Shown: one piece after another, positions 28,243 to 58,202 of the stretch
How positions within the stretch are numbered: position 1 is the stretch's first letter
How the letters are laid out: each line of letters opens with the position of its first letter
Assembly (NCBI GenBank): GCA_030704615.1
Contig: CM060733.1
Location: forward strand, 23,808,001 to 23,872,000
Source: Takakia lepidozioides
Lineage: Eukaryota; Plantae; Bryophyta
DNA length: 64,000 nt
Direction: 5' to 3'
The notes under the pieces: generated by a model
What the model was told of the DNA's origin: nothing
Databases searched by the model: none
Seen by the model: only the letters and a program-made list of their open reading frames with translations
Program-made: the position numbers and the translations under genes

Positions 28243-30385
28243 TGTAGTGTGAATGCAGGGGAGTAACATTGAAAATTTTGTTGGGCATCAAATTACGGCA
28301 TTGATGAAAAAGGGAGTGCCTGGTACTAATGTCGGGAGGGAATTACCCAGGCCTACAGGTAATTCCATGGGAACACTATGCTCTTGCTCTGCCAGGACAA
28401 AATATGGCTAAGTCATAACATGCGCATTTTTCATCCTTGGAATGAATGATTTTCGTCGCGTATGTTTAACCTAGAAACTCGAGCTGAGGAAAACGAGGAG
28501 GAAGACGACGGGCAACTCTTCAGAGCTGCTGCCGTGGAGTTGTCAGGCAGGCTGGCTTGGGAACTTACACCTGTGCCATGTGAATCAGCTTGCCTTAAAG
28601 CACGACGTTAAGGGATCTGCTTGGCATTTTGTGCAAAGAGAAGCGGTGCCTCTTTCTGCGTGGTAATAATCAATTTTGAAAGCTGAGCAGGTGCTAAGAG
28701 CGGTGCACTACCGCTGCCGCCATTGTCTTGAAGAGTACAGTTATGAGGAGATGGAGCGCAACAACAGCTGTTGGGGAATGAGAAGTGAAGGCTGGTGTGG
28801 ATGCGCCTCAGGTCATCTGTAATTAAAACTTGTAGTTGCCTTCTGTCTTAGAGCTGTAGGAGCACATCAATCCTTAGGGCAGAAGTACACATGTAGAAGG
28901 ATAGGGTAGAGGTTGGCAAGCACAAGGATGTTGCCAGCTGATGAAGCAAGCCGTCATGACATGATGAGAACTGGAATCAAGATGAGAAGAAGCGTTGAAT
29001 ATGGCTGATGACAGCGATGGTGAGGTGCCAGCTTAGCAGGCAGAACCACCGCTTCACACGAGTATAAGACAGATAAGTTCTAAGAGTGTTAGCTCTCTTT
29101 TTGGGCACTTAGGAATGACTTTCTGAAGTTTTTTGGAACTGTCTCTTGTATCTGCTGAAGGGGACAGAAATGTGAGGAGTAGAAAAGGCCTTTGAAAATG
29201 GAATGAAGACACTGGAATTCAAACCAGGATAGGGTGGAGATGGATGCACCTGTTGTTACACTGTCATTAGGAAAAGGATAGAGGGGACAAGGATAGCTCA
29301 CATCAGGGTCAGAATGGTTGCTGTTGTTGTGTTCATTTTCTTCATTTTCAGTGTCTTCAGCCAGCATAAGCAAACAGCCCTGGATGTTGAAACAGTGGAG
29401 CCAGTGTAGAATTAGCTTGGTGGATAAAGGAGAACAGGGATGGTCAGACAGAAACGGATTTGAAGAACTGAGAGGGATGACGTGGATAGGGAAGAACAGT
29501 CAATACTGTTTTGGGGTTTGGATCTGATTTATAGAAGTGTTCTCAACATGTGAATGACTGAGGTTTGCATTTGAGGAGAAAAGGAGAGCTGTCAGGGTGT
29601 GTGATTTGAGATCTGTAAAAGGGTTGTGAAGCACCTTGGACAGATAGGATCCACTTGGGGAAAGATAGTGCAAGGACCAGTCACTGGAGAGAGAGAAAAA
29701 GAGAAAGACCGACAGAGGGGCAGATCATGTCTTGTAACCAAGGTTGACTTCAATGATGGATCCACTGGATGCCTGGCTGGATGTGCATTTGCATTGCATC
29801 ATAGCCATGCTGTTGTGAAAAAGTGAGGAATCCACACACCAAGGAAAAAGAGTGAGAGAGAAAGAAAAAGTGAAAAGGGAGAAAGGGTTGATGAGGGATG
29901 GACAAATGGAGAGGCAAGGTCAAGAAGACATGAACCCTGAATGATCAACTTAGTGGGCCTGCAGTTCATGGCAGATCTGAGCTGTCCACCCACCTAGACC
30001 GTGATCTCATTACAAAAAGGGGCTTCCAACGTGTTGCAGACCAAGGGAACTGCCCACAAGGGCAGTGTTTATCACTGACGTAGGGCTGATTGCATCACTG
30101 AATACATCGTGGCAGCATAGTCGGTGCTGTACCTGCAGGTAGAGGATGTTGTGTAAAAGGTAGAACCAAGAGTGAACAACAATTTTACTCCCCATCCATG
30201 TCTTCTCTTCCGCTGCGGCGTGGATGAGGATTGCTTGAACTCTGATCACGAAGGACCTGAGGGAAACCCACAGCCAAGTGACGACAGTGGGACAGATTTA
30301 GAAAGAACCTTCTTTCTTTTGCTCCGCTTAGAATGGAAGGAAGCACAATTAGAATTATACAGAAGGGGATTCACGCCCCTTCTTT

Positions 30386-30397
30386 TGGTATCAGAGC
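30386..30397 (+). promoter_or_regulatory. Primer-binding site (initiator Met tRNA)
   Basis: TGGTATCAGAGC directly after the 5' repeat. Confidence 0.92.
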
Positions 30398-30464
30398 TAC
30401 GCTGGATCTTGTCTGAGAGTTGTAGGTTTTCAGTGTAGCAAGATAGGAGAGTGATTTGCGAGCA

Positions 30465-33400
30465 ATGGTGACTAACATTCCATTTTACGGAAAGAAGGAT
30501 GAGGATGTTTGCAGCTGGATCCAGAATCTGAAAAGGGATGGTGAGAGGAGGAGCTTTGACGAGCACAAGTTATTTATATCGGCAAGGCTGAATCTCAAGG
30601 CACGGGCTGACACTTGGCATCGAATGCAAAAACCAAGGTCCATGAACTGGCATGATTTTCAAGTAGCCATAATCTTGAAATTTGGAGAAGAAGGTCAATC
30701 AAGTAAGAGTAAAGTGATGTTAGCAAGGAAGTTTGATGGGATAGATACAAATGTGGAAGAGTATGCTACAGGAATGGAGGAGAAATTGTCTCTGATTGAG
30801 AAGGATACTCACAACAGGTTCACACCTGTGAGTTCTATTGATCATGAACCTATACCAGATCACAAAACCATGTCACGGAGGTGCTTTAGGGAGAAGAACC
30901 AAATCAGCGAAGTCCATGCAATGCTTCCTCGAGTTCTCAACTTGAACAGCACAAGGCAGCAAGTAGAGTGTTGCACTGCATGTCCATCAAGACAGAATCA
31001 GATCCGAAGTGAAAAGAATCACCGGCTGGGGCTGCAAGTGGGAACATGTGGAATGCAAGATTCATGCTGTGGAATGTTTGAACAATGGGAATCGAAGAGC
31101 AGCAGAAGGATGGAGTGCGAATGTGTAAGCTCTCTTGGCACAAACGTTGTGAATGTGTTTTGTGATGAGGAAGGAGAGATCATGGAAGACATCTTTTGTT
31201 CAACAGAGGATCAATCAGGTGTCAATGAAGAGTGTACACCTAGATTGCAAGTTCCTGTGCAGTTCCCAAGGTCTTATACAAGGGCACATGTAGGGCAAGA
31301 CATACCTGGGGAGTTTGGGCATGATACCACCAACTCCCCAAGCAATAGTGGTACAACCGGTGAAGTGAGTGTCATAAGAGAGGAAGATGTCAAGGAGTCT
31401 TGGACAGATCTGATGGAATGGGTGAAGGAAGAGTGTACTTTGCTTGCTCAAACTAGACAGGATATAGATCAAGATGCACACCTAGATCAAAACATACTTG
31501 GGGAGCTGAGAGAAGTTGCATCTCGATTAAGAACAGACTTGGTGGAGAAGGAATTAAAGGTGAAAGATGCAAGAGATGACGTTGTAGCTGCCCTAGCCCT
31601 ACGGAGAGAAACTGAAGTCCAGGTGGAGAACCTAGTCATGGAAAATCAACATTTACGGTTGGCCCTCGAGAAAGCTGACCAAGAGCTGAGTGGGGCCAAG
31701 GAAGAGTGCGTGGATAAGCTCCGTGGTGATAACAAGCATCTTCAGGCAGATGTGCAACGGCTCCAGCTACTTTTGGAGTCGAGTACGTCATCAGTCAATG
31801 ACATGTTCATGGGGACACCAGGTACCCTAAGTCAGGACAAAGAAGAGGAAACAGAAGCTTCTTTGGATGTTGGACCATTGACAAATGTTGGGAGAGATGA
31901 AGGGAACATGGAGTATCAAGTGTTGGAGGATTCATGCAAGGGAGAGGCCCTGCAGATTGAAGAAGAAATCTGTCTAAGAGGAAAGAGCTTACAGATCACT
32001 CCAGAGATGGAAGAAGTGGTGAAAAGGAGCCTGGAAGATCGAGACCTGACAACACCTAAACTTGCACATGATGACATGAAAAGTGGAGAAGTCATTAGGG
32101 CAGGCAAAGGGGCCGAAAACCATATGTGGAAGCCGAGAGTTTGGACATGCGAAGGCTTGCATTATGTGGAAGAGGGTCACAAGGAGAAGATGCATGACAA
32201 TGAGGAGGTTCTTCCGGGAATAGATCCGCCAAGAAAAGAGGGCAAATGGTGTCAAAAGTGGTGGCAAAGCACAAGGAGATCATTCATTGCTGACTGCAGC
32301 ATACTCAGGTTCACAAGCTGTGTACCGAAGTGTCAAGGACGGAGAAAGGGTGCTAAGGCATGGATACGACATGCTATCTTGATGGTAATTATGTGCTGCA
32401 GGTGCCTATGGCAGACAGTGAAGAACTGGTTGGAGCAGGCCATGCTAATGACGATTTTGTGCTGCCAATACATATGGTGTATGCAGCTCAGCAATCTGAA
32501 GCAAGGTTGTAAAAGAATGGCTGGTCCTGGTGGAAGATGGAAGCAAACATGGGCAGAGAAAGGACCTGCATACACACCAAGACACCAGCTCAAGAGGGGA
32601 GCAAGTTTGGGGAGCTGCCTTTGGCGGGTAATTTCTGTGGACATACCTGAAGGAGACAGAGATATACCAGCAGAGGTAATTCAATATAGAGGCAATGAGC
32701 TTTCCACAGATGCTGGAAATGAAGGAGAGAAGCCCAAACAGGTGACGTTCCTGTGTGTGTTGAATGCATGTGCGAACCTGGCAGACCTGGTAAAAGGCGA
32801 AGAGGTCCATGGTGACAGTATCAAATCTGGTATTGCACCAGATATCATTATGGAGACTGCCATTGTTGACAGGTATGCCAAACGTGTGTGTGACAATCTG
32901 TCTCACAGAAAAGTGGGGCCATGGAGAGTAATGATTGCAGGTTATGCCCAGCATGGTTGTGAAATTCAGGCTCAGGAGATGGATGGGCAGTTGATGTGGG
33001 AGGCTATGAAGCCTACCCATGTCACGATCACTTCTACTTGCAAAGTATACACCAGCCCTGAATCTCTTAAAGAGGGCAGGCTGGTTGAAAGGGAAGAAGG
33101 AAGGCATGGTAACCAGAGGGTTGCCCATGACTTGCCACCAACAATGCAAATGAAATTGCAGCCTGCTGGTGAGGACAACCTACATGCAGGAAATGAGGCA
33201 GTACGACAGCTGCAAGTGTCGATAGGAGCACAAGTGGTAGCTGAGATTCAAAACAAGGAGCCAGGGAGCAACAACAAAATTGGGAAACGCTGGTTTGTGT
33301 GGGAAGGAGATCAGGACCTGCCTGGCATGAACTACAAGAAGAGGAAGAAGGCATTGTCACAAATTGGATTTGCTCTGGCCGGCGGAACAAATGGACAGCC

Positions 33401-33839
33401 GGGACGCTGTCACTTAAACAAGAGAGGCTGGACGACGATGCAAGCTCAGGGATGGAGCACAAAAACTGTGGCCAGGGAAGAAGGCCAAGAAATTGGCATG
33501 AGGAGTTGCATGGAAACCAGGTGGTGGTGTCAGTTTGAGAACAACCCTGCTCGCACCAGCCAGACAGAAGTGGCCATGAAGATTATGAGCAGAGAGGGGT
33601 TTCCCTTTGCTGAAGGCCAAGGCATGACAATCAAAAACAATATTATGAACGGACCTCTCCAAGATATCTGGAGCAGAAACAGAAGAGGAATTAACACAAT
33701 GTGCCTGTTGGGAGTACCTTATGATCCTGGAAGGGAAGCTGCACGAAGATGCAGGTTGAGAGATGGAGCAGACAAGGAATGGGTAAGAAGTAGGAGGGAT
33801 TTAAAACCCTTCATACCACCAATAGGTGATCAGCCATGA
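30465..33839 (+). CDS. 1124-aa chimeric protein: Gag-like N-terminus, coiled coil, captured PPR repeats; no RT or IN
   Basis: FYGKKDEDVCSWI...ARLNLKARADTW...WHDFQ resembles retrotransposon Gag. VTFLCVLNACA...VHG...WRVMIAGYAQHG resembles PLS-class PPR. ORF is uninterrupted. Confidence 0.75.
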   Translation: MVTNIPFYGKKDEDVCSWIQNLKRDGERRSFDEHKLFISARLNLKARADTWHRMQKPRSMNWHDFQVAIILKFGEEGQSSKSKVMLARKFDGIDTNVEEYATGMEEKLSLIEKDTHNRFTPVSSIDHEPIPDHKTMSRRCFREKNQISEVHAMLPRVLNLNSTRQQVECCTACPSRQNQIRSEKNHRLGLQVGTCGMQDSCCGMFEQWESKSSRRMECECVSSLGTNVVNVFCDEEGEIMEDIFCSTEDQSGVNEECTPRLQVPVQFPRSYTRAHVGQDIPGEFGHDTTNSPSNSGTTGEVSVIREEDVKESWTDLMEWVKEECTLLAQTRQDIDQDAHLDQNILGELREVASRLRTDLVEKELKVKDARDDVVAALALRRETEVQVENLVMENQHLRLALEKADQELSGAKEECVDKLRGDNKHLQADVQRLQLLLESSTSSVNDMFMGTPGTLSQDKEEETEASLDVGPLTNVGRDEGNMEYQVLEDSCKGEALQIEEEICLRGKSLQITPEMEEVVKRSLEDRDLTTPKLAHDDMKSGEVIRAGKGAENHMWKPRVWTCEGLHYVEEGHKEKMHDNEEVLPGIDPPRKEGKWCQKWWQSTRRSFIADCSILRFTSCVPKCQGRRKGAKAWIRHAILMVIMCCRCLWQTVKNWLEQAMLMTILCCQYIWCMQLSNLKQGCKRMAGPGGRWKQTWAEKGPAYTPRHQLKRGASLGSCLWRVISVDIPEGDRDIPAEVIQYRGNELSTDAGNEGEKPKQVTFLCVLNACANLADLVKGEEVHGDSIKSGIAPDIIMETAIVDRYAKRVCDNLSHRKVGPWRVMIAGYAQHGCEIQAQEMDGQLMWEAMKPTHVTITSTCKVYTSPESLKEGRLVEREEGRHGNQRVAHDLPPTMQMKLQPAGEDNLHAGNEAVRQLQVSIGAQVVAEIQNKEPGSNNKIGKRWFVWEGDQDLPGMNYKKRKKALSQIGFALAGGTNGQPGRCHLNKRGWTTMQAQGWSTKTVAREEGQEIGMRSCMETRWWCQFENNPARTSQTEVAMKIMSREGFPFAEGQGMTIKNNIMNGPLQDIWSRNRRGINTMCLLGVPYDPGREAARRCRLRDGADKEWVRSRRDLKPFIPPIGDQP

Positions 33840-33866: not shown

Positions 33867-33897
33867 AAAAGGGGAGACACACTACATATGTAGTGTG
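33867..33897 (+). promoter_or_regulatory. Polypurine tract followed by a perfect 20-bp palindrome (putative internal att site)
   Basis: AAAAGGGGAGA then CACACTACA-TA-TGTAGTGTG. Confidence 0.85.
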
Positions 33898-36455
33898 AAT
33901 GCAGGGGAGTAACATTGAAAATTTTGTTGGGCATCAAATTACGGCATTGATGAAAAAGGGAGTGCCTGGTACTAATGTCGGGAGGGAATTACCCAGGCCT
34001 ACAGGTAATTCCATGGGAACACTATGCTCTTGCTCTGCCAGGACAAAATATGGCTAAGTCATAACATGCGCATTTTTCATCCTTGGAATGAATGATTTTC
34101 GTCGCGTATGTTTAACCTAGAACTCGAGCTGAGGAAAACGAGGAGGAAGACGACGGGCAACTCTTCAGAGCTGCTGCCGTGGAGTTGTCAGGCAGGCTGG
34201 CTTGGGAACTTACACCTGTGCCATGTGAATCAGCTTGCCTTAAAGCACGACGTTAAGGGATCTGCTTGGCATTTTGTGCAAAGAGAAGCGGTGCCTCTTT
34301 CTGCGTGGTAATAATCAATTTTGAAAGCTGAGCAGGTGCTAAGAGCGGTGCACTACCGCTGCCGCCATTGTCTTGAAGAGTACAGTTATGAGGAGATGGA
34401 GCGCAACAACAGCTGTTGGGGAATGAGAAGTGAAGGCTGGTGTGGATGCGCCTCAGGTCATCTGTAATTAAAACTTGTAGTTGCCTTCTGTCTTAGAGCT
34501 GTAGGAGCACATCAATCCTTAGGGCAGAAGTACACATGTAGAAGGATAGGGTAGAGGTTGGCAAGCACAAGGATGTTGCCAGCTGATGAAGCAAGCCGTC
34601 ATGACATGATGAGAACTGGAATCAAGATGAGAAGAAGCGTTGAATATGGCTGATGACAGCGATGGTGAGGTGCCAGCTTAGCAGGCAGAACCACCGCTTC
34701 ACACGAGTATAAGACAGATAAGTTCTAAGAGTGTTAGCTCTCTTTTTGGGCACTTAGGAATGACTTTCTGAAGTTTTTTTGGAACTGTCTCTTGTATCTG
34801 CTGAAGGGGACAGAAATGTGAGGAGTAGAAAAGGCCTTTGAAAATGGAATGAAGACACTGGAATTCAAACCAGGATAGGGTGGAGATGGATGCACCTGTT
34901 GTTACACTGTCATTAGGAAAAATAGAGGGACAAGGATAGCTCACATCAGGGTCAGAATGGTTGCTGTTGTTGTGTTCATTTTCTTCATTTTCAGTGTCTT
35001 CAGCCAGCATAAGCAAACAGCCCTGGATGTTGAAACAGTGGAGCCAGTGTAGAATTAGCTTGGTGGATAAAGGAGAACAGGGATGGTCAGACAGAAACGG
35101 ATTTGAAGAACTGAGAGGGATGACGTGGATAGGGAAGAACAGTCAATACTGTTTTGGGGTTTGGATCTGATTTATAGAAGTGTTCTCAACATGTGAATGA
35201 CTGAGGTTTGCATTTGAGGAGAAAAGGAGAGCTGTCAGGGTGTGTGATTTGAGATCTGTAAAAGGGTTGTGAAGCACCTTGGACAGATAGGATCCACTTG
35301 GGGAAAGATAGTGCAAGGACCAGTCACTGGAGAGAGAGAAAAAGAGAAAGACCGACAGAGGGGCAGATCATGTCTTGTAACCAAGGTTGACTTCAATGAT
35401 GGATCCACTGGATGCCTGGCTGGATGTGCATTTGCATTGCATCATAGCCATGCTGTTGTGAAAAAGTGAGGAATCCACACACCAAGGAAAAAGAGTGAGA
35501 GAGAAAGAAAAAGTGAAAAGGGAGAAAGGGTTGATGAGGGATGGACAAATGGAGAGGCAAGGTCAAGAAGACATGAACCCTGAATGATCAACTTAGTGGG
35601 CCTGCAGTTCATGGCAGATCTGAGCTGTCCACCCACCTAGACCGTGATCTCATTACAAAAAGGGGCTTCCAACGTGTTGCAGACCAAGGGAACTGCCCAC
35701 AAGGGCAGTGTTTATCACTGACGTAGGGCTGATTGCATCACTGAATACATCGTGGCAGCATAGTCGGTGCTGTACCTGCAGGTAGAGGATGTTGTGTAAA
35801 AGGTAGAACCAAGAGTGAACAACAATTTTACTCCCCATCCATGTCTTCTCTTCCGCTGCGGCGTGGATGAGGATTGCTTGAACTCTGATCACGAAGGACC
35901 TGAGGGAAACCCACAGCCAAGTGACGACAGTGGGACAGATTTAGAAAGAACCTTCTTTCTTTTGCTCCGCTTAGAATGGAAGGAAGCACAATTAGAATTA
36001 TACAGAAGGGGATTCACGCCCCTTCTTTTCACACTACACCCCCACTTGAATGGATTCTAGAGACTTAGCCTGGTTGGAGCTATCAACCCATATAGCAGAT
36101 CCGTACTCCAAGGCAGGTCCCCCCTTAAAGAAAATCCTACAAGCACTTTGCGTCAAGGTGAATGAACACTTTAGTTCACTCCACAGGCAGCACCCCTTCA
36201 AGAAAAACCTGATTGCCGGGGACATAATTTGGAGAATTCAATGACAAAGCCTGGTGGCACTTCGTACTTCCCTCCTAACATGGTGTAAAATGGGGGAAAT
36301 GGACACCCCATTATACATTGTACTCATAAGACGTTGTTTGCCATAGCCTTCTGGCCATTGACCCCGCACCCAGTTTGAGCGGGAACAAAAGGAACAGAAC
36401 CTACCTCAGTCAGGGGTTGACGTTGGTAGTAAGACTTACCTTCATATAAAGATTT

Positions 36456-37032
36456 AATCCGGGTTTTCCAGATATCCTCTAGAAAACCCTTCACATAAGC
36501 ATCAATCTGCTAGGTGTGATTTGCCCAAAAACTAGGCCTCAGGAGGGCCGCGGCTTTTGGCTCAGCCTCGAGAGTTTCAAAGTTGGTAAACAGGGGTACA
36601 GGCACAATTCCCTTGATTGAATTGAAGACAACGTCTCTTTGGTGAGAGAACCCCGGACAGTGTATCAGAAAATGAATACTGTCTTCAGATTGCCCACACA
36701 ATGGACAATTGCACTCTCCCTTTCCTCTCTGCTTCTGTTTGCTGTTCAAAGGTAGGCTTCCTGCCCTGAGTTTAAATTTCAGTCTAGTTCCAACTTGTGG
36801 GTAGACCCTTGAGGTCATCCAAGATGTCCACCCCCATGTCACTGACTGGAAACAAGTTCAGGGAAGTTCTCTGCCTAACTTCATTTTCATCAGACAATCT
36901 GATGGCAACAGACATGGCTTCAGACAGTACAGCCTCTAAGTCAGATTTATCCAGCAGGGTCAATACTTGCGGATCCAGGTCCAGGTCCTTGAGAATCTTT
37001 TATACTCTCTTATGCCAGGACTTAGCCTGTTT
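36456..37032 (-). mobile_element. Second copy of the LINE 3' fragment
   Basis: Highly similar to ~27473-28050 with the same left breakpoint taatccgggttttccagatatcc. Confidence 0.88.
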
Positions 37033-37090
37033 CACATTATAAACAACAATCAGCCAAGGCAAAGAGGGCAAAAAGGCTGGTGTGTGACTT

Positions 37091-38112
37091 ACAAGCCGAG
37101 CCTCAACAGATGCCTTCCCACCACGTCCTGTTTTTGAAGGCTTCTTGATTGATGAATTTGCAACCTTCATGAGGGCACTTTTTGCGCTGAATCCTGCTGT
37201 GTGCCAATACGATACCAGCCTGTCCCAATGAGCTTCCTTCAGATGCGCAGGCCTCCCCTCGCCTGCCTTGTACACTGCATGGATCTCGTGTCTTTGGGTT
37301 TTCAAGGCAATGCCAAGTGTCTTCCTCATGTGCTCATAGTCAAGACCACGTGGCGTGTACGCAAATGTAGAGTTTAGAATCCTGTATATTTCTTCAATGA
37401 CAGATTCATCCTGCGCTGCAATATGCATTGACATATCACACAAACGCCACATCTGGCCTTTGAGGGCTGCATGCCAGGTATTGCGTGCTGGTCCAATGGG
37501 CTCTCCAGCTTTGTCAACCGGAAGCACTTGAGGGGGGAGTCCATCTTCGTCTCGCGCATAATGGTTTCGGATTGCCTCTGCCCTGGCATGCCTGTTCACC
37601 CGCCTCAAAGCATTAGCTCGCTCCTTCTTGGTCATAGGGATCTCTTCCTTTGCCTCCTCAGGTGGTGGGGCAGCTGGGGGTTGCCATGGGGAATGGGGGG
37701 CGGGACGGTATCGCCCACCGTATGGCCCAAAAGGTTCGTATGGTGGACGTGTAGATGTCGGGTAAGCATGTGGGTCTGGGAGGTAAGGGGGAATAGGTGG
37801 AGGAGAATGGGCATATGGCTGCTGTGGGTAACCACCTGGAGGGGGCTTGTATTGGATGTGCGGGTTGTAAGGGCCCGCAGCGCCATACTGATTGGGGGTG
37901 GGGTAGGCATGTGGGTAATGTGTGTACGGAGGGTACTGTGGAATAGGTCGTGGAGGTGGTCGTGCTGCGCCTGGGGACTTGTTTGTAGCAGGGTTGACTT
38001 GTTTGAACAACCCCCGCCCGATGGACTGCCCACCACAGCTGCAGCGCCTTCGATGGAAGCTCGTTGACCAGCGAGCGGATGGTGAGATCCACGTGATCAT
38101 TCTTTCTCCCAT
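37091..38112 (-). CDS. CACTA TnpA/Ptta-like accessory protein exon with Pro/Tyr-rich N-terminus
   Basis: RPAHLKEAHWDRLVSYW...KTGRGG resembles the plant En/Spm Ptta family; ends at a GTAAG donor. Confidence 0.6.
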
Positions 38113-38235
38113 TTTTTGTCGATTATTTTGTTCTAGGCATTTTCCCTACCAACGGCATGATGTTCTCATGTTGTTCATGGACTTGCGTGGACCTGGCAGG
38201 AGGGGACCTCTGGGTATTCAGCAATTGCTCGCAAA

Positions 38236-39447
38236 GTGGAGGATATGGAAAGAGCACAGGGTGCACAACACAAAGATATGATGGATTTGAATGCTACAAT
38301 ATCGCATGTGATGATGTACCAGAAGGCCATGGCTGAGAAATTTGGGATCAGCATTTCCTCACCTGCCTTAGTGGGCTCATCCATAGCAAACAGCTCGTGC
38401 ATCGCTGGCCCTTCAGCCTCGAGACGTCTGGAGGACAGGTTTGACTTGCCTGGCATGTCACCAGGTAACGTCACTCCCGTTGATGCATTCGAGGATGATG
38501 TGCAGGTGGAGCATGTTGGCCCAGGTGGAGGGGACGACACCCCTACCAAGGAACTTACGCGTCCTCGTGCAGTTCTGTCACACTGTGTGGTAGTGGAGGC
38601 GCATGCAGAACTCCGGCCTGCTGCTGTCGCGGTGGGGGCATCTGAGACAACCCTGGACATTGACCTTGTTTCCCCGCAGGCAGACATTACCCAACAACCC
38701 ACGGTTGTCACTTCCACTCCCAACCTTCAATTAATGTCGGAGAATGTCGTGCACACAACAGTGGAGAAGGGCAAGCATTTGCTCATCCTAGATATTAATG
38801 GATTGCTGTGTGAGTGCGTCCATGTCGGGAGCGGTAATGCGTTTGTGGTTCCAAATGGCCTTGAGCACAAATTATGTGGTAGCAAGATGGTCGTTGTAAG
38901 GCCTGGTTGCAAAGCTTTTTTGGACAAGTGTTTCGAACACTTTGAAGTGGCAGCATGGTCTTGTATGCAACCACGTAACTTCCTACCCACAGTGGACTGG
39001 CTTTTCCATGGGCACCGTGACCTTGCATTCAAGTGGGATGGGGGATATTGTGAGCAGTCCACTGACATGGATGGGAGCCTGCCCATGAAACCACGGTTTC
39101 TGAAGAACCTATCTACAATGTGGCGGGACAACTGTGTCTGGAATCTTGAAACCACTCTTCTTGTTGACGACACACCGCACAAGGGGTCGAAAAATCCAGC
39201 ATACAGCGCAATTTTCCCACTGCCTTGGAGAAGTCGTTCTGTAGAGGCGCACAATGATAATTTTCTTTTGACCAGCTTATGGCCCTTCTTGGAGGGGGCA
39301 GCTAAGGCTCCGAGCATTCCAGAATATCTCAAAGGGCAACCCACATTTGGGCAACAAGCTATCAGCCCTCGAGCCATTCAGCCTCGCCAGGTAACAGACT
39401 TTGTAGTGTGGTACACAGTGCCAGACATTAGAGGCATTTTTGTGTGA
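38236..39447 (+). CDS. ORF with an FCP1/NIF-like HAD phosphatase domain, inside the CACTA
   Basis: KHLLILDINGLL, VRPGCKAFL..CFEHFEVAAWS, FLKNL..MW, TLLVDDTPHK...NP. Confidence 0.75.
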   Translation: MEDMERAQGAQHKDMMDLNATISHVMMYQKAMAEKFGISISSPALVGSSIANSSCIAGPSASRRLEDRFDLPGMSPGNVTPVDAFEDDVQVEHVGPGGGDDTPTKELTRPRAVLSHCVVVEAHAELRPAAVAVGASETTLDIDLVSPQADITQQPTVVTSTPNLQLMSENVVHTTVEKGKHLLILDINGLLCECVHVGSGNAFVVPNGLEHKLCGSKMVVVRPGCKAFLDKCFEHFEVAAWSCMQPRNFLPTVDWLFHGHRDLAFKWDGGYCEQSTDMDGSLPMKPRFLKNLSTMWRDNCVWNLETTLLVDDTPHKGSKNPAYSAIFPLPWRSRSVEAHNDNFLLTSLWPFLEGAAKAPSIPEYLKGQPTFGQQAISPRAIQPRQVTDFVVWYTVPDIRGIFV

Positions 39448-39874
39448 CTCCCTTGTGCCATTGCCAGCCTCATTTGTGCTTAAGTTGTGGCAGTAAAACA
39501 TGTTGTGATAGAGTTTGTCAAATTTCTGTCGCAGTGCCAACTGTAGGCATTGACAGTTTGGGTGCATCTTATTGTGTTAGTGTAATTTGAGTTCCCAGTG
39601 TAGATAATATACATTTTTGGTGCTTGTTGGTTGGTTGTAGGTGCTTGGCCACGAACGAGGCCCCCCAAATCAAAGGGCAGCACACCTTCACCCTTTGAGG
39701 AAGCCGACACCACTGATCCCTGATTCGCAGAATGGGGTAAGTGTATGCATCTGCTATTCTCCCCTTCCCGACCTGGATAGACAAATTGTTATTAGCTCAT
39801 TGTAGACCTTGTAGACACAATACATTCCATGATCCGTGTTCCACAATTCTCATGCAATTTGCTATGTTTGGGGT

Positions 39875-40166
39875 GGGATGGCAGTTCGTGGTGGGAGACC
39901 ATGTCAAGCTCATAGACACTGTTTCGCAATCAACAGCCGGATCTGGCCGCATTGCTGGTCTCCAAGGGATGGAGGTGAGTGAAGGGTACCCTGTCGTGCC
40001 AGAAGGCTATGTGGCCATCCACATTGATGATGTCCGCATTCCCAATGCCCCTCTACCATATCACAACAAATCCATGAAGCCTCATCACACTGAGTTGGGA
40101 GACACTGTAGGTTACATTACTGTGTGGAGTGACAAACTAGTGAAGACCTTGCAGACAAAGAGATGA
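39875..40166 (+). CDS. CACTA Tnp1/En-Spm-like C-terminal domain exon
   Basis: G.I...VPEGYVAIHIDDV...APLPY...LGDTVGYITVW pattern typical of En/Spm accessory proteins. Confidence 0.55.
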
Positions 40167-47257: not shown

Positions 47258-47443
47258 CCCATTGAGAAATTGAAGGTTATCGGTTCCTTGGACAACTGGG
47301 CGCAAGAGAATTTGCTACCCCTTTTGAAGCCCGTAGACAAGTGCTGGCAAACCCAAGACTTCCTTCCTGAAGCTTCATCGGAAAGTCTCTTTGATGAGGT
47401 AACGGAGCTCCGAGCCTGGGCCAGGGAATTGCCTGATGACTAT
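47258..47443 (+). pseudogene. Captured fragment of a stearoyl/acyl-ACP desaturase
   Basis: EKLKVIGSLDNWAQENLLPLLKPVDKCWQTQDFLP...LRAWARELPDDY matches the conserved N-terminal part of plant acyl-ACP desaturases. Confidence 0.85.
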
Positions 47444-49950
47444 GTGATGTGGCGTTACAGAGAAGCCAGATACTGGGCCCACTTTGGTACCTTTGGGTAA
47501 TTGATAAGGTGATAGGAGCTGACCTTCTCGCCATCAGGTCTTGTAGCAGGGAAGAAGGGCTGATGGAACTCGTCATGCTCTAATTGGCCAATGCTCCAAG
47601 TGTGTGGAAATCAGACCAGTTGCAGATCACACAGATTACTCAACTGCACGATTTTTGGAGGAACAAATGACCTACAGATACGGCACACAAAAGGTCACAT
47701 CAACAGATCAAGGCTGAGAGTGGATTAAGTGTGAGTTTCGGAGATATATGAGCGATTCAGTAGGAAACAAGAGCAGTCGGCCCCATACTGGTCACAGAGC
47801 AACGGACGGATTGGATGCGTGATCAATCATTGAAATCAAGCATCAAAGTAATCAGTGGAAGAAAGGGTGGAGAGTGTAACAGAGACCTCAAGACATGGTC
47901 TGCCAATCGGGTTGAAGTGCAGGCTGCCACCAATCTCCCTCCATGCGAGCTGGAACTTACAGGAAACGACCTGAGAGTCAGCAGTGATAGTACATGGGAC
48001 GGATGACTGAACAAATGCAGCTGAGGGATGACGAAGCGGCAACGCGGTCCATCATGGAGGAGAAGCCGATTGGAGTTTAACAAATCGAGCTGCTCCATGG
48101 TAATGGCGAGGCGACCCCAAAACAACATAGAACTACCTGTTCGGAACCCGTAGATAACCTGGGAACAATTTTTAATGGTGAGAACGTTTTGGTGTTAAAA
48201 AAAAAAAAAAACCTTTTTGATCTAATTTAAATGTTTAAAGAGCCTGGTTGGTCATATCTTTGTCAAATGGGCTCTGTTTGACTCAGTTTTTGAGGGGATA
48301 GCTGCAGAAAGGGGAAATCTACCTATCTCGGTTTTAGTTTTTGGGACTCTGCTAAAAATCTATGGAATTTTTAGAGTGTGAGTGTGCCGTGAAAGACCCA
48401 CAATTCTGTTTCTAGAACCTGTTCTGGTCTATATGAGAGACAAATCTGTGGATGTCCTCTTTGTATGGCTGGGGGAAATGAGGATGTAATTGAAGGGCAG
48501 GTCTCTTCTCTTAGCCTGTGCACACAAGGGGACAAGATTTATGTTTCCTAAGGAACTCAGACTGATTTGAGTGGAGAACAGTTGGACGAGTTGATTGCAT
48601 ACTGGGAGTCAGGCATTAGCAGTAGACAACAAACTACTGTAGTTGGCGTTGAGGGCCTCAATATCACTTTGGACAGTCAGAACTATGTTGGAGCCAGCAG
48701 TTCTGCAGCTGTAGGTGAAATACCAAAGTGGGTGAAAGCTAGGCTTGGAACACAGCCAAAGACAGCCCCGGGTACCAAGGTGTTCAACCACAAGGTCGTG
48801 GTGTATTGGAGCAGAGGAGCAGGAGCTACACAAGTTTGTGCAATCAGACATGGTTGCAGCCGGACACGCTCTGCACAAGGCAATCACGAGCGGGGGTTCA
48901 TTAGCAATGACAAATTTGTTTTGCTTGAAGGAGATGCAGTCATCCGCAATGAGGACACCCGCAATCGTCTCAAAGCTTTCGAGTTGAGAGACTATCAGAC
49001 CCTACCTTTGTTTTCTTTAGTGTTCAGTGAGCGGGAGATAAGGGAGTATTGCTTTGTCTCTACCTGGCAGAAAGAGGAGGAGGGTTGGTTAGAGCGAGCT
49101 ACTGTAGCTTGGGACAAGGTTAGTGGCAGGTTTTTGGACATAGATATACCTCCTACACCTTACTATCATGCAGAGCGAGGCACTTTGAGAGAAGTCTGGC
49201 AGTTGATAGCATAGATCAGGATTAGATCTTGCTGGGTCGGGCTTCTATTCTTCCCCTCCATCTCTGTACTATTTTCATTACCTTGTACTTGTAGTTGCCA
49301 AAGCCTCTCTTGGTGGAGGCCAGTCAGTCCGGGGTTTTGGGCTAGGATATTCTGCAGGATCAGCATTGTAGCTGGATTTTGGTGTGGGGGTGTTGATGTT
49401 TTGATTTCTTGTGTTTGGATCCCCCCCAACACCTGCATGCTTGACTGTGCGCCATGTTGGTTTTGTGTGGGCGCTTGCTTTCATAGGGATTAGGCCGGAT
49501 TTGATCACCGGTCAATCCTAGAGTATGCTGTCGGTGGTGAGGCTGGAGTGATGACCAGCAAGAGCACCGGTGTTTCTTCTATGGTGAGACTGGGTTGATG
49601 ACCAGCCAACCATAGGAGTTCTTGCGGTGGATGCAGGTGCAGGTGCCCTGAGCCATTGGGATATGACCCTTAAACTGCAACAGGTGCCCACCCGTGTCAC
49701 TATTAGAATTAGTACTAGAGCCTTATAGTGTCACGTGGAGGAGGTGCACATTGTGAGTGCCATCACGGAGTTACCCAGGGGTTCTGAGGGGAGTACGGCT
49801 ACAGGCAGTAGCAGTGAGAGTGGGTTCACCAGACGAGGTGTTCGTTTCAGACCACCTTCACCTCCACCCTCAACTAGTGCAGAGTCAGACACAGACTTGG
49901 AGGCTTCATCAACAGGTGTGCAGTTTCATTCGCCATTGTTGTGGGACGAC

Positions 49951-51662
49951 ATGGAGGAGATGTATGGAGCTACCAAAGGGCCTCGTAGGTACTGTGGAGC
50001 TGTGGGCACAATCAAGTTGGATGACTTTATCCAGGAGTTCGATAGCTGGTGTGATTTGCAGCAGATGCGCGCAATCCACATCTATTCACTCCATTCATGG
50101 CGTGGAAGGGACTGTTCCAGCATTTGGAAGGCCCGCCTATGGACGATTACCACGAGTTCAGGCGAGGACATGAAGCAGAGATTGAGGAGTGGAGGATGTA
50201 TTGGTCACCTGACTACGTCTCCATTACTTGAGGCACAACGCGACCAGTAGCTGCATCAGTACCAATATCTCCCACTGCCAGCACTAGTAGTGGAACAAGT
50301 AGTGCCGGTACTTCTGTAGGTGGTACCAGTTCAAAAGGTGCTACTACTCCTCCTGCCACGACTACAACACATGTGCCTAGATTCAACCCGGTGGTGGAGT
50401 TCTTCCAGGAGTTGCGGAGGAACTACCAAGGTATACGGACAGAGAAGCTGCGAAGTTTGCAAGACTTCTAGCGCAAACCCAGTGAGAGCCTGCGAGAGGC
50501 GTACACTCGTATGAGGCGCTTGATAAGTGTGACCCAAGGGGTTACTGAAGCTCAGGCAATCCAGTTTTGGTATGGAATTCTGGACAAGGAGCTCAAGAGA
50601 AGGGTGCGAGATGCAACCCTGTTACAAACAGCCCAACCCACATTAGCAGATGTGTTTCTGCTGGCTGAGCGGATTGAGCTCAACATGGTGGAGGAGCGAG
50701 TTGTTACCATTGGATTTGGCATGGACATGCCTGCACGAGGCGCAGCTGCCAGCCCACAGGCACAAGGGACTGCCCAACAGCGTGGTCAGGGGGGCAAGGT
50801 TTCCCAACCCAAGTTCCATGGAGCTTACAGGGGACCTCAGGTGCAAAGGCCCGTGGCATCTTTTGTAGGCCAACAGCAACCAGGGGTGATATGTTGGACA
50901 TGTGGAGGACCCCATGTCAAGAGAGATTGCCCAGAGAGTGGCAAAAAGCCGGCACAAGCACAGCCTGCACAGTTGCAGTGTGAGCATTGTGGCAAGTATG
51001 GGCATGGAAATGCCCAGTGTTATGACTTGCATCATGAGTTGCGCCCAGGCCAGTTCCAAGGGAACAATGGTGGCCGGGGGCAAGGTGGACCAGCCCAGAG
51101 AGGACGAGGTGGTCGGGCACGAGGTGCAGGCCAAGGGCAAGCTCAACATGGCCAAGGACGCGGAGGTCAGGGTGTTGACCAAAGCATGGCCAACCGGCTT
51201 CAGCAGCTAGAGCAGAGGCTCGCTGCCATGGCCACAGCTCAGGCGGTACCGGCTCCCAGGCGGGATGGTCCACCTCCTGCGCCTGAGGGAGGAGATATGG
51301 GAGGCATGGGATTCATGTGCGGAGCAGCGCTACCACTAGAGCAGGTGGAGTCTGCTGCAGCCGTGACTCGAGGAGCATCACGAGTTCCTGAGCCACGACG
51401 TGCAGAGGTGGAATTGGATCCACAGCGTGGGGAGGCAAGCCGTCAGGTGAGGCTTCCTCAGTCATTCACATTGGCGGAGACAGTGTCGACGCTATCCATG
51501 GCACCTAGTTCTCGCCTGACTGTTACCGAGGCGGAGGTTACTATGCCATTGGGGAGAGCTACATGTGCAGCACTGACACCTGCTACCAAGGCTAGTGCAG
51601 CCGGTGTGTTGTTGGGGGAGCCACCTCTGTGTGTCAAGCCCCACTGTTCTTGGCAACCATGA
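49951..51662 (+). pseudogene. gag: Gag with two CCHC zinc knuckles and an RGG-rich tract (frameshifted)
   Basis: LDDFIQEFDSW; ESLREAYTRM; CWTCGGPHVKRDC; CEHCGKYGHGNAQC. Confidence 0.85.
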
Positions 51663-52356: not shown

Positions 52357-52694
52357 TGGGGCAAGATGCCAACACTAGCCGCCTTTACAGCTGCAGTTAG
52401 TTGGCCTGGAGAGTTGCTGGAAGGCAATGCCCATGCAGAGGATGTGCCACCTCCAGCAGAGCAGGATGACATGCATGGTATGGCGGAGTTGCCTGCCATG
52501 GTTGCTCACACTCCATTGTGGGGTACGAGCAAGGATTTGCAGCAGGTTGCTGATCGACGGGTGCAACAAGCCTGGGTAGAGGCTTTTGTACCGTCAGGAG
52601 AGGAGGAGAGTGCGGGTATTGCACCAAGACCACCTCAGTTGTCACCATTGGATACCACACCTATTGTGTGGCAGTATCTGGATGAAGGCATTGC

Positions 52695-53640
52695 CTTCTG
52701 GACTTGTTTGGCGGGATTAGCACCGGATTGGCTGCTGTGCTACAGGCAGGTGTGCGGGTAAGGCGTTACCTGTATGTGGAGAGGGATGAGACTGCACGAC
52801 GCGTCTCACTACGCCATGTTGCTTAGTTGGTACAGCAGTACCCTGCTTTGTTGCCAGTGTCTACAGTTCGTGGATACCAACAAGCCTTGCCAGCAGACAT
52901 TTCGTTGCTGGGGGCGCCGGATTTGGAGCAGGTTGGCTCCATTGATCTGGTAGTGGCAGGTTGGCCCTGCCAAGAGCATTCATCAGCCGGGCATGGCAAT
53001 GGATTGCGAGACTCGAGGACGGGTCTGTTTTGGGAGATGGTGCGGATTTTGCGCCACTTGCAGCTTCATCAAGCTGTATCGCGAGCATACATCTTGGAGA
53101 ATGTGCCACTGATGGGCGATTCTCGGGCCAGGGTGATGGCCAGTGTGCATCAAGTCTGGTCGTGGCTTGGGTCAGCAGTGCTGCTGGATGCAGCTGCAGT
53201 GGGATCACGGGCTCATCGTCCACGGCTATGGTGGACTAACTTGATGCCATCCGCACTGCTCAAGCGTGCATTTGATGGGGTGCAGCGACCAACACACCTC
53301 ATAGTGGACAGCATTTTGGACACAGGGAGGCAGTCTCAACGTGTGAGACACGATGACCGTTCGCCTTTGGCAGTGGTCAATAGGGTGGGTCAACCACAAG
53401 CATCATTACCTACACTGCTCAGCTTCCCAGGATCCCATGCTTTTCGGGATGGTGGACCTGGCCTCCTGTGGGATGCTCAGTTGTAGCAGTTAGTAGAGCC
53501 TAATGCCGACGAGCGAGAGCGGGCTATGGGGTTTTCCACTGGGACCACGGCGGTGCCTTCTCTTTCTGAGGCATCACGTCGTCAGGTGTTGGGGCAAGCA
53601 ATGGATCTCAATTGCTTGACCTGGATTATCAGCTTGGCTA
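52695..53640 (+). pseudogene. C5 cytosine DNA methyltransferase domain within Pol
   Basis: One frame with motif I LDLFGGISTG, II YVERD, IV DLVVAGWPCQ, VI YILENV, VIII AHRPRLWW, IX ERERAMGF, X RRQVLGQAM. TAG stops at 52824 and 53484. Confidence 0.92.
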
Positions 53641-54098
53641 TGGCCGAGCAGCGCAGAGTATGGAGTACACTTCCCTTCATGGTCTCCCTGCCTACCGAGA
53701 CGGTACAGGCAGCGAGTGGGGGCGAGCAGGTGAGGACCACGAGGTGCAGGCCGCATCCATGGCACACGTGGGAGGTGCTCGAGGTTCAGAAGGAGTTGGC
53801 AGCCAAGGCAGCTGTGATGGATGAGGTTGGGGATTCTTCTCGGGTTGATGAGGTCCTCAAGGATGAGATGATGGGGCAGGATGAGGCCTTGTCATTGACT
53901 GAGCAGGCAGGGAGTACTGCTCAGGAGGTTGCGGCATAGCAACCACGGGACGCGTCCTCTACCTCTAAGCCCATTGGACTTAAGGTTGCAGTTACGGAGG
54001 ACAATTGGGAGCCTGACATTGGACCCATTGTCACCGGATGAGAGAGACGACGTATACGGTGGTTCCTGAGGGCTTACAGGAATTGCTTTGCTTTCAGT

Positions 54099-54945
54099 TT
54101 GAAGGACTTAGGAGCACTGAAGGGTCAAGAGATTCGCATTGAATTGGCTACTGACACGCCAATCTTTTGGAGACCCTATAGATACAGTGACATGGAGAGG
54201 TCCTTGATTCAGATGAGAACTAAGGACCTTTGGGAGGCTGGTTTGGTGGAGCTATCTGGGGGAGAGTATGCTTCAGCCACAATGATCCCAGCCAAGAAGG
54301 ATGTCTATGGCAATTGGACGGAGAGACGTATGTGCGGTGATTACCGGCCTGTAAATCGTCAGACCAAGTCCGATAAGTATGCTATGCCGACACCAGAGGA
54401 GATATTTGATGCCATTGGGCATGCCAAGGTCTTTAGCACGTTGGATTTACGATCCGGATATCACCAGTTGCCGATCAAGGAGGCGGATAAGCAGAAGACG
54501 ACATTCTGGGGGATCAATGAGCACGGGAAGGATTGCCTATACCAGTGGCGGTTCTTACCATTTGGGCTTAAGAACGCTCCGGCAGAGTTTCAGAGAGTCA
54601 TGGACAGGATTTTAGCAAGGGTGGAGTTTGCTCGGTGCTACATAGATGACATCATCATCTTTAGTGCTACAGTGGAAGAGCATGAGAGACACCTTCAGGG
54701 GTATTTGAGCGCTTGAGGGCGCACGGATTGAAGTTATATCCGGGAAAATGCAAGTTTTTCCACAACCAGATTGAGTATCTGGGTCACATGATATATTTCT
54801 AGAGGATTGGGGGTACAGCAGACTAAGGTAGAGTCCATTGCACAGGTTCCACGCCCCACGGATGTGAGCCGAGTTCGAGCTTTCATGGGGTTAGCAAACT
54901 ATTATAGACGGTTTGTTAAGGGATTTAGTGCCATTGCAAAGGCTC
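54099..54945 (+). pseudogene. pol: Reverse transcriptase and start of the connection/RNase H region
   Basis: RMCGDYRPVN, FSTLDLRSGYHQ, PFGLKNAPAEFQ, YIDDI, FMGLANYYRRFV. Confidence 0.95.
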
Positions 54946-55709
54946 TAAAGGTCAAGAGAGTTGTTCAGACAGTAAAGAGGGGTTTGCGCAAGTATGGCTT
55001 GCAGAAGGGACACCTAGGAGATTGGGACCTTCAGTTACCCTGGTTAACCATGGGCTACAGGTTCAGCAAGCAAACATCACTTGCCTCCTTCTCACCATAC
55101 TTTCTTCTCTTTAGCCGAGAGCCGGATTTGCCTACATCCATTCGCAAAGAAGCTGCTACAGTTCTTAACCTTGACGATCCGGACGTGTGGGCACGTGCAT
55201 GTGAGCAGCGTGCAGAGTTGTTCAAGAAAGTCATGCCCATGGCTTTCGAGAACCTTGCCATTGCACAACATCGTGATACGTTGAGGTATGCTACCATACG
55301 TGGTGGGGGCTATCGTCCTGGAGTTCGGAGATTTAACCCTAGTGACTATGTCTATCTGCAGCAGACTCCTCCTACGATCTTGGATGTGATTGCAGGACAT
55401 GTTATTTTGAGGGTTCGAGAGGTCTTGCCCTCAGGCGTCTTGGTCTTGGAGGGTCGGGATGGCATAACTTGGAAGGACCATGTGCGTAATTGTGCGCCAT
55501 GTCACCTTCCGGATGTCGATGGCAGGATTGACCCAAACCTGGCAGTGGTATCTGCAAGTTTGAGGTGCATGTTGTGTGGGTCTGCTAAAGGGGCAGCCAC
55601 CATGCTGATGTGTGATCGATGCTCTAGAGGTTGGCATACGGGATGCTTGACTCCACCTCTTGAGATGGTTCCGGATGGGGATTGGTTATGTCCACAATGC
55701 ATTGGATAG
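54946..55709 (+). pseudogene. C-terminal part of a DDE integrase core plus a terminal PHD finger (55566-55700)
   Basis: VQTVKRGLRK...DWDLQLPW..MGYRFS...SPYFLLF; CMLC...MLMCDRCSRGWHTGCL.PPL..VPDGDWLCPQC (C4HC3). Confidence 0.88.
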
Positions 55710-58202
55710 TGGGAGTGGATACAACCATGGGAGGCTAACAAGAAATGCAAGGCCAAGCTACTAAGAGACCTTGAACACACGAGATCCTGGCTCAAGTTCA
55801 CAGATTGCAAGACGGAGACTAACGATGGGGCTACTCTTGTACCCGGCCTCTTGGTCTACAGAGTTTGAGTACAACAGGGCCAGTGATAGAGGACTTAGTA
55901 CGGCTGTGGCTATTACATCTTGTAGCTATCTGGAGTTAGAGGGACCTATCCACCAGCTAGGGGGGCGATTGTGGCAGACTACTTTATTGTGCATCTATGT
56001 GTGGTGTGGTTTGGACAGCGATATAGTTGTGTAGCGATATGTATGCGCACGACAGCTGTCAAGTTAAATAAACACAGTGTGAAACTAACTAGAATAAAAC
56101 TAGTTATTTGTATTTAACACTTGGATTTAGTTCAAGTGTTAAGTCAGGTATCAAGTTTGAGCTTGACACCTGAACCATCTTATCTTCACGAGAGCGTCAG
56201 TCGCGCAGCTCATCTATCTTGAGTTGAGCCTGCGCGACCGAGCTCCTTCATGCGTTTAGAAGCTGAATGTGCTTATGATGGGAGGATAGGTTGTTGTGGG
56301 GTGGAGTCCCCATAGCTTGGGGTGCCGCTGCCTCGACTTCTATTTTAAAGAGTGATGCTGTTGGATTCATGTTGTTTCTTGTGTGAACAGTGTGTCCTTA
56401 GCTTTCTTATCTATTGTGGCAGACTACTTTATTGTGCATCTATGTGTGGTGTGGTTTCGACAGCGATGTAGTTGGACAGCGATGTAGTTGCGCACGACAA
56501 AGGCCTCGTGATGACTAGTTAGTGCAGCAAGATCACCTACAACAGCTCTCTCTACACTCTCAAACCAAAGCTGATCTTTGTCACATATATCACACAACAG
56601 ATCATCCACTTCCTGCGACAACTCAATATCTCTCTCTAACTCTGCTGCCTGCTGCCTACTTTCGAAATATTCAGGGCCTAGATCCACAAAGTTTTCAAAA
56701 TTATAGTATTCCGGGTCACAACTATCTAGAGAGTTGTCAGACTTCTCAAACCTTGGCGACCACGCCTCTGCCTCCCCCAGATCGTCATAATCACTACCAC
56801 CAGGAAAACCCAATGAAACAACAAGGGCTGGAACGCAAAAAACAGCAGGCTCAGGAAGTGGCGACGCTGGCAAGGCAACACTGCTAGGCCGCGCGCCGTT
56901 GGTAGTGTTAGCAACAGCAAGAACGTCAGCAGGGTGAGAAACAACGGGAGGAGCAATAATAACAACACTAGCAGAATGAGAAGCGGTAGCAGGGTCAACC
57001 TCTACACTAGGATTAGCTTCAACAACAAGTGCCACGCTAGTATGAAGAAATAGGCTCTCCCCCTCTCTGCAAGCTACACAAGACAAGTCATGAACAACAG
57101 CCATCCCCTGCAATCACACCCCAACGCACTTCGTGAGACGACAAAATCGCAGCAGTAGGAGAAAATATGGCAAAGCGAGGAGCCGCCATTGATAAGACGC
57201 ATTAGCGAACCACTTAGGCAGTAGGATGTAGAGCAGATCCCGCGAAAAGACCTAACTGATCCTGACAGCGCGGGCAGGATCCACCAACGCCTAGAGTACC
57301 CGGCTTCTCTCCACCATAAAACAAGCCTGAAGCATATACTCCTTTCCTCTCAAGAAGCAAGGTTGCACAACAAAGGGGCGAGCGGAAAGAGCAAGCAACG
57401 CGCGTGAGGAGGATCAAACACACGAATCAGGCACTAAGCAGCTCTCACAAGCTTGTACACCAAAATCACATATACACTAACACCCGAGTACACCGCCCTT
57501 TATACATACAAAAAGCCCTAGCCGTAGTGGCCCGCCGCGTGGCGAGGCATTATAGGCCAAAGCCCACGGCGTTGTCTTGTGGCCCTAGATCTGATGAAGG
57601 GCCAGGATCGAGCCACCTGCAAAAATTAACCCTAACCTAGATATCATTGTGCCGGTTTAACGGCTTCATACGCCAAATAAAATATACTATGGATGTGTAT
57701 CGCCGTTTTGGATGAAACGGGCTATTTCCAGGCTAGGCAATTATGGGGCTTTACAAGCATATGTGCCTAACTTCCAACTCCAAATAAAATTTCCATCCAG
57801 GACAACTGTCCCCTGTTTAAAAGAAAAGAAAAGAAAAGAAAATTGGATTACATGAATCAGAATATAATGGAACATTGGGAACAGTGCTGCAATGAAATGT
57901 CATGTACCCACCCCCCACGCGTGGGTCCAGCTCAGATGGACAAACGGGCAAAGAGCCAGCAGGGTGTGGGCACGTGCCCTGCTGCTGGGCTTGAGATCGA
58001 TGCAGGGCTGACCACGGGAGGCACTCCTTGCAGCGATTCCTGTGCGGGAACTTGGAAGGAAGAAGGGGGGGGGGGAGGATTGATCAGACAAACAAAACCC
58101 ATATACAGATCCTTACGTAGCTTGTGTGGAAGGAGGTGGAGTGATCATAAGCGCTTTTCTGCGGGAGATTGTTGATTTTGCTTGGTAGAGGAGGGGTTAG
58201 CG

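Follow-up and report, generated by a model that had tools for sequence, protein, structure and literature searches.

Two retroelements with split long terminal repeats (LTRs), here called E1 and E2, lie in a window of 64,000 nucleotides from the bryophyte Takakia lepidozioides (assembly GCA_030704615.1, contig CM060733.1, positions 23,808,001 to 23,872,000 of the forward strand; "the window" means this whole stretch, and its coordinates are counted from its first letter). Both read B-internal-PPT-A-NN-B-A, in which A and B are the two parts of the repeat, PPT is the polypurine tract, and NN is the pair of nucleotides at the centre of a CA-NN-TG dyad at the A|B boundary; the outer ends are TG...CA, and perfect 4-bp target-site duplications, CCCC around E1 and AAGG around E2, enclose the elements. 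The same split architecture recurs in relatives of E2 that encode a DDE integrase, and is thus systematic rather than a one-off. We regard it as an even call whether a Viridiplantae-wide clade of integrase-encoding LTR elements integrates obligatorily from joined-LTR (circular) DNA by way of an internal palindromic att site.

Results

An initial annotation, made from the letters alone, had held that two elements without common repeat sequence share this layout, that A ends in CA and B starts with TG so that A-NN-B is palindromic, and that the 5′ repeat is without A while the outer TG and CA ends carry the duplications. Self-comparison of the window and reading of the junctions bore out each point. 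E1 and E2 have no sequence in common; the joint is GACA-GC-TGTC in E2 and has a TA centre in E1, where positions 33878–33897 form a perfect 20-bp palindrome, present nowhere else in the window, in which chance would give 0 matches. The split-repeat anatomy of both elements is confirmed at the coordinates given below. Neither has two full LTRs abutting the primer binding site (PBS) and the PPT: the left repeat lacks A, A and not a TG end abuts the PPT, and a second A follows the right repeat. Both display the split direct repeat (A1-internal-B1-A2-B2) of DIRS, PAT and Ngaro elements, and both also have the TG...CA termini and short duplication of Ty3/gypsy elements. The parts of E1 are as follows.

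28239–28242, no strand: left target-site duplication CCCC, sequence at the element edge
28243–30386, plus: left B, the LTR minus its last 9 bp, beginning TGTAGTGTG; repeat with 33889–36029 (2145 bp, 99.77% identity)
30386–30397, plus: PBS, a perfect 12-nt tRNA-iMet complement, the sole exact match in the window
30474–33839, plus: sole long open reading frame (ORF), 1130 codons, weakly gag-like at its N-terminus; contains a PPR-like fragment near 32900
33867–33877, plus: PPT, from sequence
33878–33886, plus: A1 (CACACTACA), 9 bp, straight after the PPT, from sequence
33887–33888, no strand: dyad centre TA, missing from the outer ends, from sequence
33889–36029, plus: right B, repeat with left B
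36030–36038, plus: terminal A2 (CACACTACA), the identical 9 bp, from sequence
36039–36042, no strand: right target-site duplication CCCC, sequence at the element edge

The left B of E1 ends exactly where the PBS begins, a stretch (30386–30397) that we take to be the complement of the 3′ end of plant tRNA-iMet. The ORF starts with a weak Retrotrans_gag match; neither reverse transcriptase (RT) nor integrase was found in it, and a search of a large protein index gave no homologue of it. With a single ORF that lacks both enzymes, E1 is a non-autonomous element. The earlier designation of both elements as Ty3/gypsy-type accordingly stands for E2, whose RT carries YIDD; for E1, with neither RT nor integrase, we infer it. 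A PLS-class pentatricopeptide-like stretch at about 32900–32980 of the ORF (Pfam PPR, E = 0.003, below the cut-off) suggests, by its similarity, that this non-autonomous element may have captured a fragment of a host gene. E1 is bracketed, at 192 and 417 bp, by a 580-bp direct repeat (27472–28051 and 36455–37036; 95% identity), the copies of which would sit about 600 bp apart without E1 and in which no LTR-like features were found.

E2 is made up of the following parts.

46011–46014, no strand: left target-site duplication AAGG, sequence at the element edge
46015–46162, plus: left B, which compared with right B has lost 211 bp internally; 98% identity to right B over the first 112 bp
46163–46180, plus: putative self-priming PBS, with 13 of 15 nt complementary to 56210–56224 in right B
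50472–51659, plus: gag region with two zinc knuckles, read by eye (zf-CCHC match weak)
52578–53711, plus: C5 DNA methyltransferase (DNMT) domain in the polyprotein frame (DNA_methylase, 2e-13; in frame with gag and RT)
53994–54950, plus: Ty3/gypsy RT with YIDD (RVT_1, 4e-22)
54951–55706, plus: integrase C-terminal region and PHD finger, from domain matches
55955–55967, plus: PPT, G-rich, kept in Calypogeia and Marchantia, from sequence comparison
55968–56054, plus: A1, 87 bp, ending GACA; repeat with A2 (90% identity)
56055–56056, no strand: dyad centre GC, from sequence; junction GACA-GC-TGTC
56057–56411, plus: right B, starting TGTC; repeat with left B
56413–56499, plus: terminal A2, 87 bp, ending GACA; an additional T (56412) stands at the B|A joint
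56500–56503, no strand: right target-site duplication AAGG, sequence at the element edge

The E2 polyprotein is one long, stop-interrupted frame that runs through gag, DNMT and RT and then jumps to the integrase C-terminus and PHD finger, without RNase H or the integrase core. E2 is a defective copy of an integrase-encoding family of the Ty3/gypsy lineage, and it carries a DNMT within a Gypsy polyprotein, as does the Gypsy-DNMT3 clade; E1 has no DNMT. The 5′ region of E2 is about 1.9 kb longer than that of its Calypogeia relative, and within it, at 47147–47497, lies a plastid-type stearoyl-ACP desaturase fragment (FA_desaturase_2, 6.5e-16), which may have been captured from the host or may mark a nested insertion.

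When the integrase-C-terminus/PHD piece of E2 was compared with 1.84 billion representative proteins, 354 family matches fell below 1e-30, with Haematococcus, Scenedesmus, Tetraselmis, Klebsormidium, Closterium, Marchantia and Calypogeia as named sources. The order in the clade is gag-PR-(DNMT)-RT-RNaseH-IN-PHD, and in the long matches RVT_1 and RT_RNaseH, often accompanied by DNA_methylase, precede Integrase_H2C2, rve and PHD; the placement of DNMT before RT in E2 is shared with its Calypogeia and Marchantia relatives. Closest to E2 are a protein of Calypogeia fissa (77% identity in RT) and proteins of Marchantia (65% in DNMT), and its DNMT is 44% identical to that of a Klebsormidium nitens family protein. 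By the RT identity to Calypogeia, the window would most probably be placed in a liverwort or a plant close to one. The family thus possesses RT and RNase H of Ty3/gypsy type (RVT_1 plus RT_RNaseH), of which E2 itself keeps RT, and the relatives possess a DDE integrase (Integrase_H2C2 plus rve), of which E2 keeps the C-terminus. The HHCC residues (H654, H659, C689 and C692) and the D,D-35-E residues (D721, D781 and E816) are invariant in 211 family proteins.

About 17 relative loci were fetched and examined, and five complete insertions and two right halves, the window included, were scored. In Scenedesmus sp. PABB004 (locus L001), an intact polyprotein of 3225 residues lies between split repeats, with B at 6760–7309 and 18497–19052 (99.8% identity), A of about 195 bp on either side of the right B (100%), GTCA-GC-TGTC at the A|B joint and the duplication CGGC on both sides. 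A second Scenedesmus copy (L007) has the same layout and the duplication GGGC; in Calypogeia fissa (L016), B is 341 bp (99.4%), A is 99 bp (100%), the joint is GACA-GC-TGTC and the duplication is GTCA. The two right halves, from a metagenome (L005) and from Marchantia (L017), read PPT-A-GC-B-A and then pass into unrelated flank. A private, perfect 4-bp duplication was present in all five complete insertions, and the permutation B-int-A-NN-B-A in all seven copies, drawn from several assemblies and no fewer than five species. The DIRS-like arrangement of repeats is therefore found in E2 and in its Scenedesmus, Calypogeia and Marchantia relatives.

The dyad is conserved, and its place in the LTR is not. 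In 12 families the core (C)GACA-GC-TGTC(A) is found after pol, and in three liverwort genera the end of A together with the GACA-GC-TGTC core is the best-conserved piece of an otherwise divergent LTR. The length of A, which is the distance from PPT to dyad, varies by family (9, 40, 87, 99, about 120, about 195, about 200 and 239 bp). The B|A joint varies by 0–4 nt among copies, with a few nucleotides' difference between the two Scenedesmus copies and one additional T in each of E1 and E2, and A-NN-B is exact.

These copies bear on the objection that ordinary LTR elements were later rearranged or misassembled, for example by deletion of the end of a 5′ LTR and duplication of a 3′ LTR. Later damage does occur in E2, which carries the 211-bp deletion in left B, the internal pol deletion and stop codons. 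However, identical topology in seven independent insertions, spread over these species and assemblies, contradicts such an origin, as do the absence of common sequence between E1 and E2 and the 99–100% identity of the B copies in young insertions. Where the initial annotation allowed that other family copies might prove to have ordinary identical LTRs, or long reads a misassembly, the Scenedesmus (L001, L007) and Calypogeia (L016) copies turned out to be split, and independent assemblies of several species have the same architecture. We consider rearrangement or misassembly hardly credible.

The repeats also invite an explanation by insertion in the manner of DIRS, PAT and Ngaro, through a tyrosine recombinase acting in trans on elements with a vestigial integrase, since the split direct-repeat topology is identical. 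This is contradicted by the 4-bp duplications in five of five complete copies, by the TG...CA ends, and by the invariance of D,D-35-E in 211 proteins; the RT and RNase H are, moreover, of Ty3/gypsy type. No match to the tyrosine recombinase model (PF00589, Phage_integrase) was found on the tested ORFs of the window or on the called genes of the 17 fetched loci. To the question, raised at the outset, of whether an autonomous partner encodes such a recombinase, the answer from E2's relatives is a DDE integrase, and we judge the recombinase explanation very improbable.

Some of the fetched loci could not be used for scoring. The Haematococcus locus (L002) is too rearranged; in it, two 40-bp copies of A (22612–22692 and 26288–26368) stand head to head within a duplicated segment, in which they adjoin the coding region of the integrase, an arrangement that might be a product of self-integration. 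Metagenome contigs L003, L004, L006, L008 and L010–L015 contain PPT-A-GC-B with no terminal A or flanks; being tandem or collapsed, they are unusable for duplications. Head-to-tail arrays of internal-PPT-A-GC-B-internal, with 99–100% identity, occur in L004, L006 (1–8934 and 11536–20469) and L010–L015; at one unit boundary of L004, the record name of which ends in _c, exactly the CAGCTG core and A are absent. One of the contigs with tandem arrays bears a name that marks it as circular. Both Scenedesmus copies sit, at different positions, in arrays of an approximately 172-bp satellite (6584–6759, 19252–19410 and 21360–21619 in L001; 12150–12337 and 25171–26373 in L007), a location that may reflect a target preference of the PHD-bearing integrase.

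In every copy, the LTR homology on the left stops exactly at the PBS. In E1 this is the tRNA PBS; in E2 a tRNA-type PBS was sought and none was found, and complementarity suited to self-priming would account for the region after left B instead. In most of the other copies tested, the sequence after left B is likewise complementary to a site 180–350 nt upstream of the end of B. The match is 12 of 12 nt in Calypogeia (L016 4122–4133, with B position 157), 14 of 14 in Marchantia (L017 20940–20953), 15 of 15 in L004 (4749–4763), 10–14 nt in Scenedesmus and 13 of 15 in the decayed E2, and changes in the paired sites covary between species. Judged from these pairings, Tf1-like self-priming appears to operate in most of E2's clade, and the complementary site inside the LTR is presumably the start of the transcript; E1 seems to differ, with a tRNA-iMet PBS and not self-priming. 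In Schizosaccharomyces pombe, Tf1 carries out self-primed reverse transcription. As in E2's family, where the pairing spans 11–15 nt, the PBS of Tf1 pairs with a site within the LTR; unlike E2's family, Tf1 has ordinary identical LTRs and an integrase with a chromodomain rather than a PHD finger.

Discussion

In textbook LTR retrotransposition, linear complementary DNA (cDNA) is inserted by its tips, and circles are by-products. The genomic anatomy of this widespread and recently active clade is not one that tip insertion can produce, despite the standard DDE integrase. Because the minus strand starts at the end of B and the plus strand at the start of A, the linear cDNA must be (A-NN-B)-internal-(A-NN-B) and cannot end in A; this argument, already made in the initial annotation, is sound, as the PBS lies exactly at the end of left B. 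If the att site is a palindrome inside the LTR of the cDNA, both processed ends would arise only once U5 and U3 have been joined, in a 2-LTR circle or its equivalent.

From what is observed, namely a recurrent anatomy, an integrase, duplications and a dyad that is conserved, one could envision the following sequence of events. The recognition site of the integrase would be the dyad (...CA-NN-TG...) inside the LTR and not the tips of the cDNA. Reverse transcription would be primed at the PBS abutting B, by tRNA-iMet for E1 and by Tf1-like self-priming for E2 and its relatives, and would give a normal linear cDNA, (A-NN-B)-PBS-internal-PPT-(A-NN-B). The U5 tip (the end of B) would then be joined to the U3 tip (the start of A), most likely by host end-joining, to form a 2-LTR circle. 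At the dyad beside this joint, the DDE integrase would nick each strand 3′ of its CA, with 2 bp between the nicks. This would leave two recessed CA-3′OH ends with 5′ overhangs of 2 nt, such as strand transfer normally uses, and the integrase would insert these ends with a 4-bp stagger. The product would be B-internal-PPT-A-NN-B-A; nicks 3′ of CA on both strands would explain its TG...CA ends, the loss of NN from the outside and the 4-bp duplication. What we infer from the copies is that the tips are joined, that the dyad is nicked, and in which order this happens. A dyad that varies freely in its position in the LTR is expected if the cDNA tips are not the substrate, and a variable B|A joint beside an exact A-NN-B fits an end-joined junction. 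On balance, we lean slightly towards reading E2 as a broken copy, E1 as a non-autonomous rider, and both as products of an internal att dyad opened after joining of U5 to U3, for which a 2-LTR circle would be the likeliest form.

A 2-LTR circle opened at its palindrome, as initially proposed, reproduces every feature seen, but its joining step is deduced and one of two possible permutations is observed, and several points weigh against it. The mechanism is read from genomic copies. A closed circle with two identical dyads predicts B-int-A-NN-B-A and B-A-NN-B-int-A in equal numbers, and the first form was found in seven of seven copies (p ∼0.008), the alternative permutation in none of them. 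Nor was a single-LTR B-int-A product seen in the small set of about 17 loci examined. The tandem metagenome arrays may be real tandems, assembled circles or collapsed repeats, and so are not evidence. The asymmetry would be explained by something that tells the two dyads apart, or by a joint made otherwise.

A joint made otherwise could come about if the same att dyad and integrase were at work with no closed circle beforehand, which we think unlikely, though well worth weighing. Under one such route, the RT would leave the U5 tip as template and continue on the U3 tip, so that the linear cDNA would gain part of a third LTR and be terminally redundant; under another, the integrase would cut the dyad near the left tip, keep both pieces in the intasome and insert them, and host end-joining would seal the end of B to the start of A. 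Either would account for the sole permutation B-int-A-NN-B-A in all seven copies, and small additions or microhomology at B|A fit RT switching as well as they fit end-joining. However, these routes are without precedent in LTR elements and need more assumptions, and they are topologically indistinguishable from the circle route on genomic copies alone. With or without a circle, the att site would be internal and B would have to be joined to A.

In outline, the anatomy is known for one species, Klebsormidium nitens, in which the repeats of KnitGypsy-Dnmt3 are arranged as in DIRS (A-coding-B-A-B) and its domains are typical of Gypsy (De Mendoza et al. 2018, PMC5890265, Fig. 4c legend). Like E2, that element has a Gypsy-type polyprotein with a captured DNMT, and K. 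nitens KFL_009030040 is among the family matches. The publication (PMC5890265) describes neither the ends nor any duplications or dyad, and it sets out no PBS/PPT logic and no mechanism. The clade described here is far wider, from chlorophytes to liverworts, and E1 shows that the architecture can do without a DNMT and without the GC dyad. We found nothing else in the literature on split or permuted LTRs with an integrase beyond De Mendoza 2018 (PMC5890265). A 2026 preprint mentions streptophyte Gypsy-DNMT3 elements and does not address their structure, and REM1 of Chlamydomonas, a Ty3/Gypsy chromovirus according to a later review, is cited among PHD-bearing Chlamydomonas elements. What appears to be new is how widely the anatomy occurs, along with the duplications, the palindromic att site and its conservation, the self-priming and what all this implies for the mechanism.

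PAT, Ngaro and TOC1 resemble the present elements in their split direct-repeat topology and in the joined-end intermediate that it implies; the enzyme that they encode is a tyrosine recombinase, and their insertions are typically not flanked by a duplication, whereas a DDE integrase (in the family) and 4-bp duplications are found here. IS3 and IS911, which transpose by copy-out-paste-in, use abutted inverted ends, a few bp apart in a circle, as the insertion substrate of a DDE enzyme. This use of abutted ends is like that proposed here, but IS3 and IS911 are bacterial DNA elements, with neither reverse transcription nor LTRs. Among retroviruses, the integrases of foamy virus and HIV-1 have been reported to cleave the palindromic junction of 2-LTR circles (PMC1180852, PMC1905944, PMC4372172), where a CA...TG palindrome is nicked on either strand of the circular DNA and integration-competent ends are restored, much as the integrase would do in our proposal. 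There, the palindrome is the tip-to-tip joint itself, the provirus is unpermuted, and the route is minor or debated; in the elements described here, the dyad lies 9–240 bp inside U3, the route would be obligatory, and the copy is permuted.

If opening of joined LTRs at an internal dyad is true of this clade, 2-LTR circles would be productive intermediates and not dead ends, and integrase retroelements would have a new mode of integration. The clade would then provide a functional bridge, long missing, between integrase elements and the circle-using DIRS, PAT and Ngaro, and would explain how split direct repeats could come about ahead of the acquisition of a recombinase. It would also offer a natural system for the disputed cleavage of circle junctions by integrase, with Marchantia as a tractable model. 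In practical terms, LTR finders that require two full identical LTRs beside PBS and PPT will mis-call such elements.

Other sequences in the window

Between E1 and E2, at 37000–45900 on the minus strand, is the remnant of a different Ty3/gypsy element (RVT_1 at 42585–43505, RT_RNaseH at 42018–42581), just beyond the 5′ side of which E2 begins; its RT is 38% identical to that of E2, and no LTRs were detected for it. We rejected a third split element composed of this remnant and the 580-bp repeat that brackets E1, as they have no matching B, dyad or PPT. Elsewhere in the window are an F-box/Kelch ORF (16561–17844, minus), for which the large protein index gave no close homologue, a separate Retrotrans_gag ORF (22171–22890, plus) and a DUF4218 ORF of the kind associated with CACTA-type transposases (23754–24509, minus). 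A pair of direct repeats, 70% identical and 12 kb apart (2791–3675 and 15078–15908), may be old LTRs.

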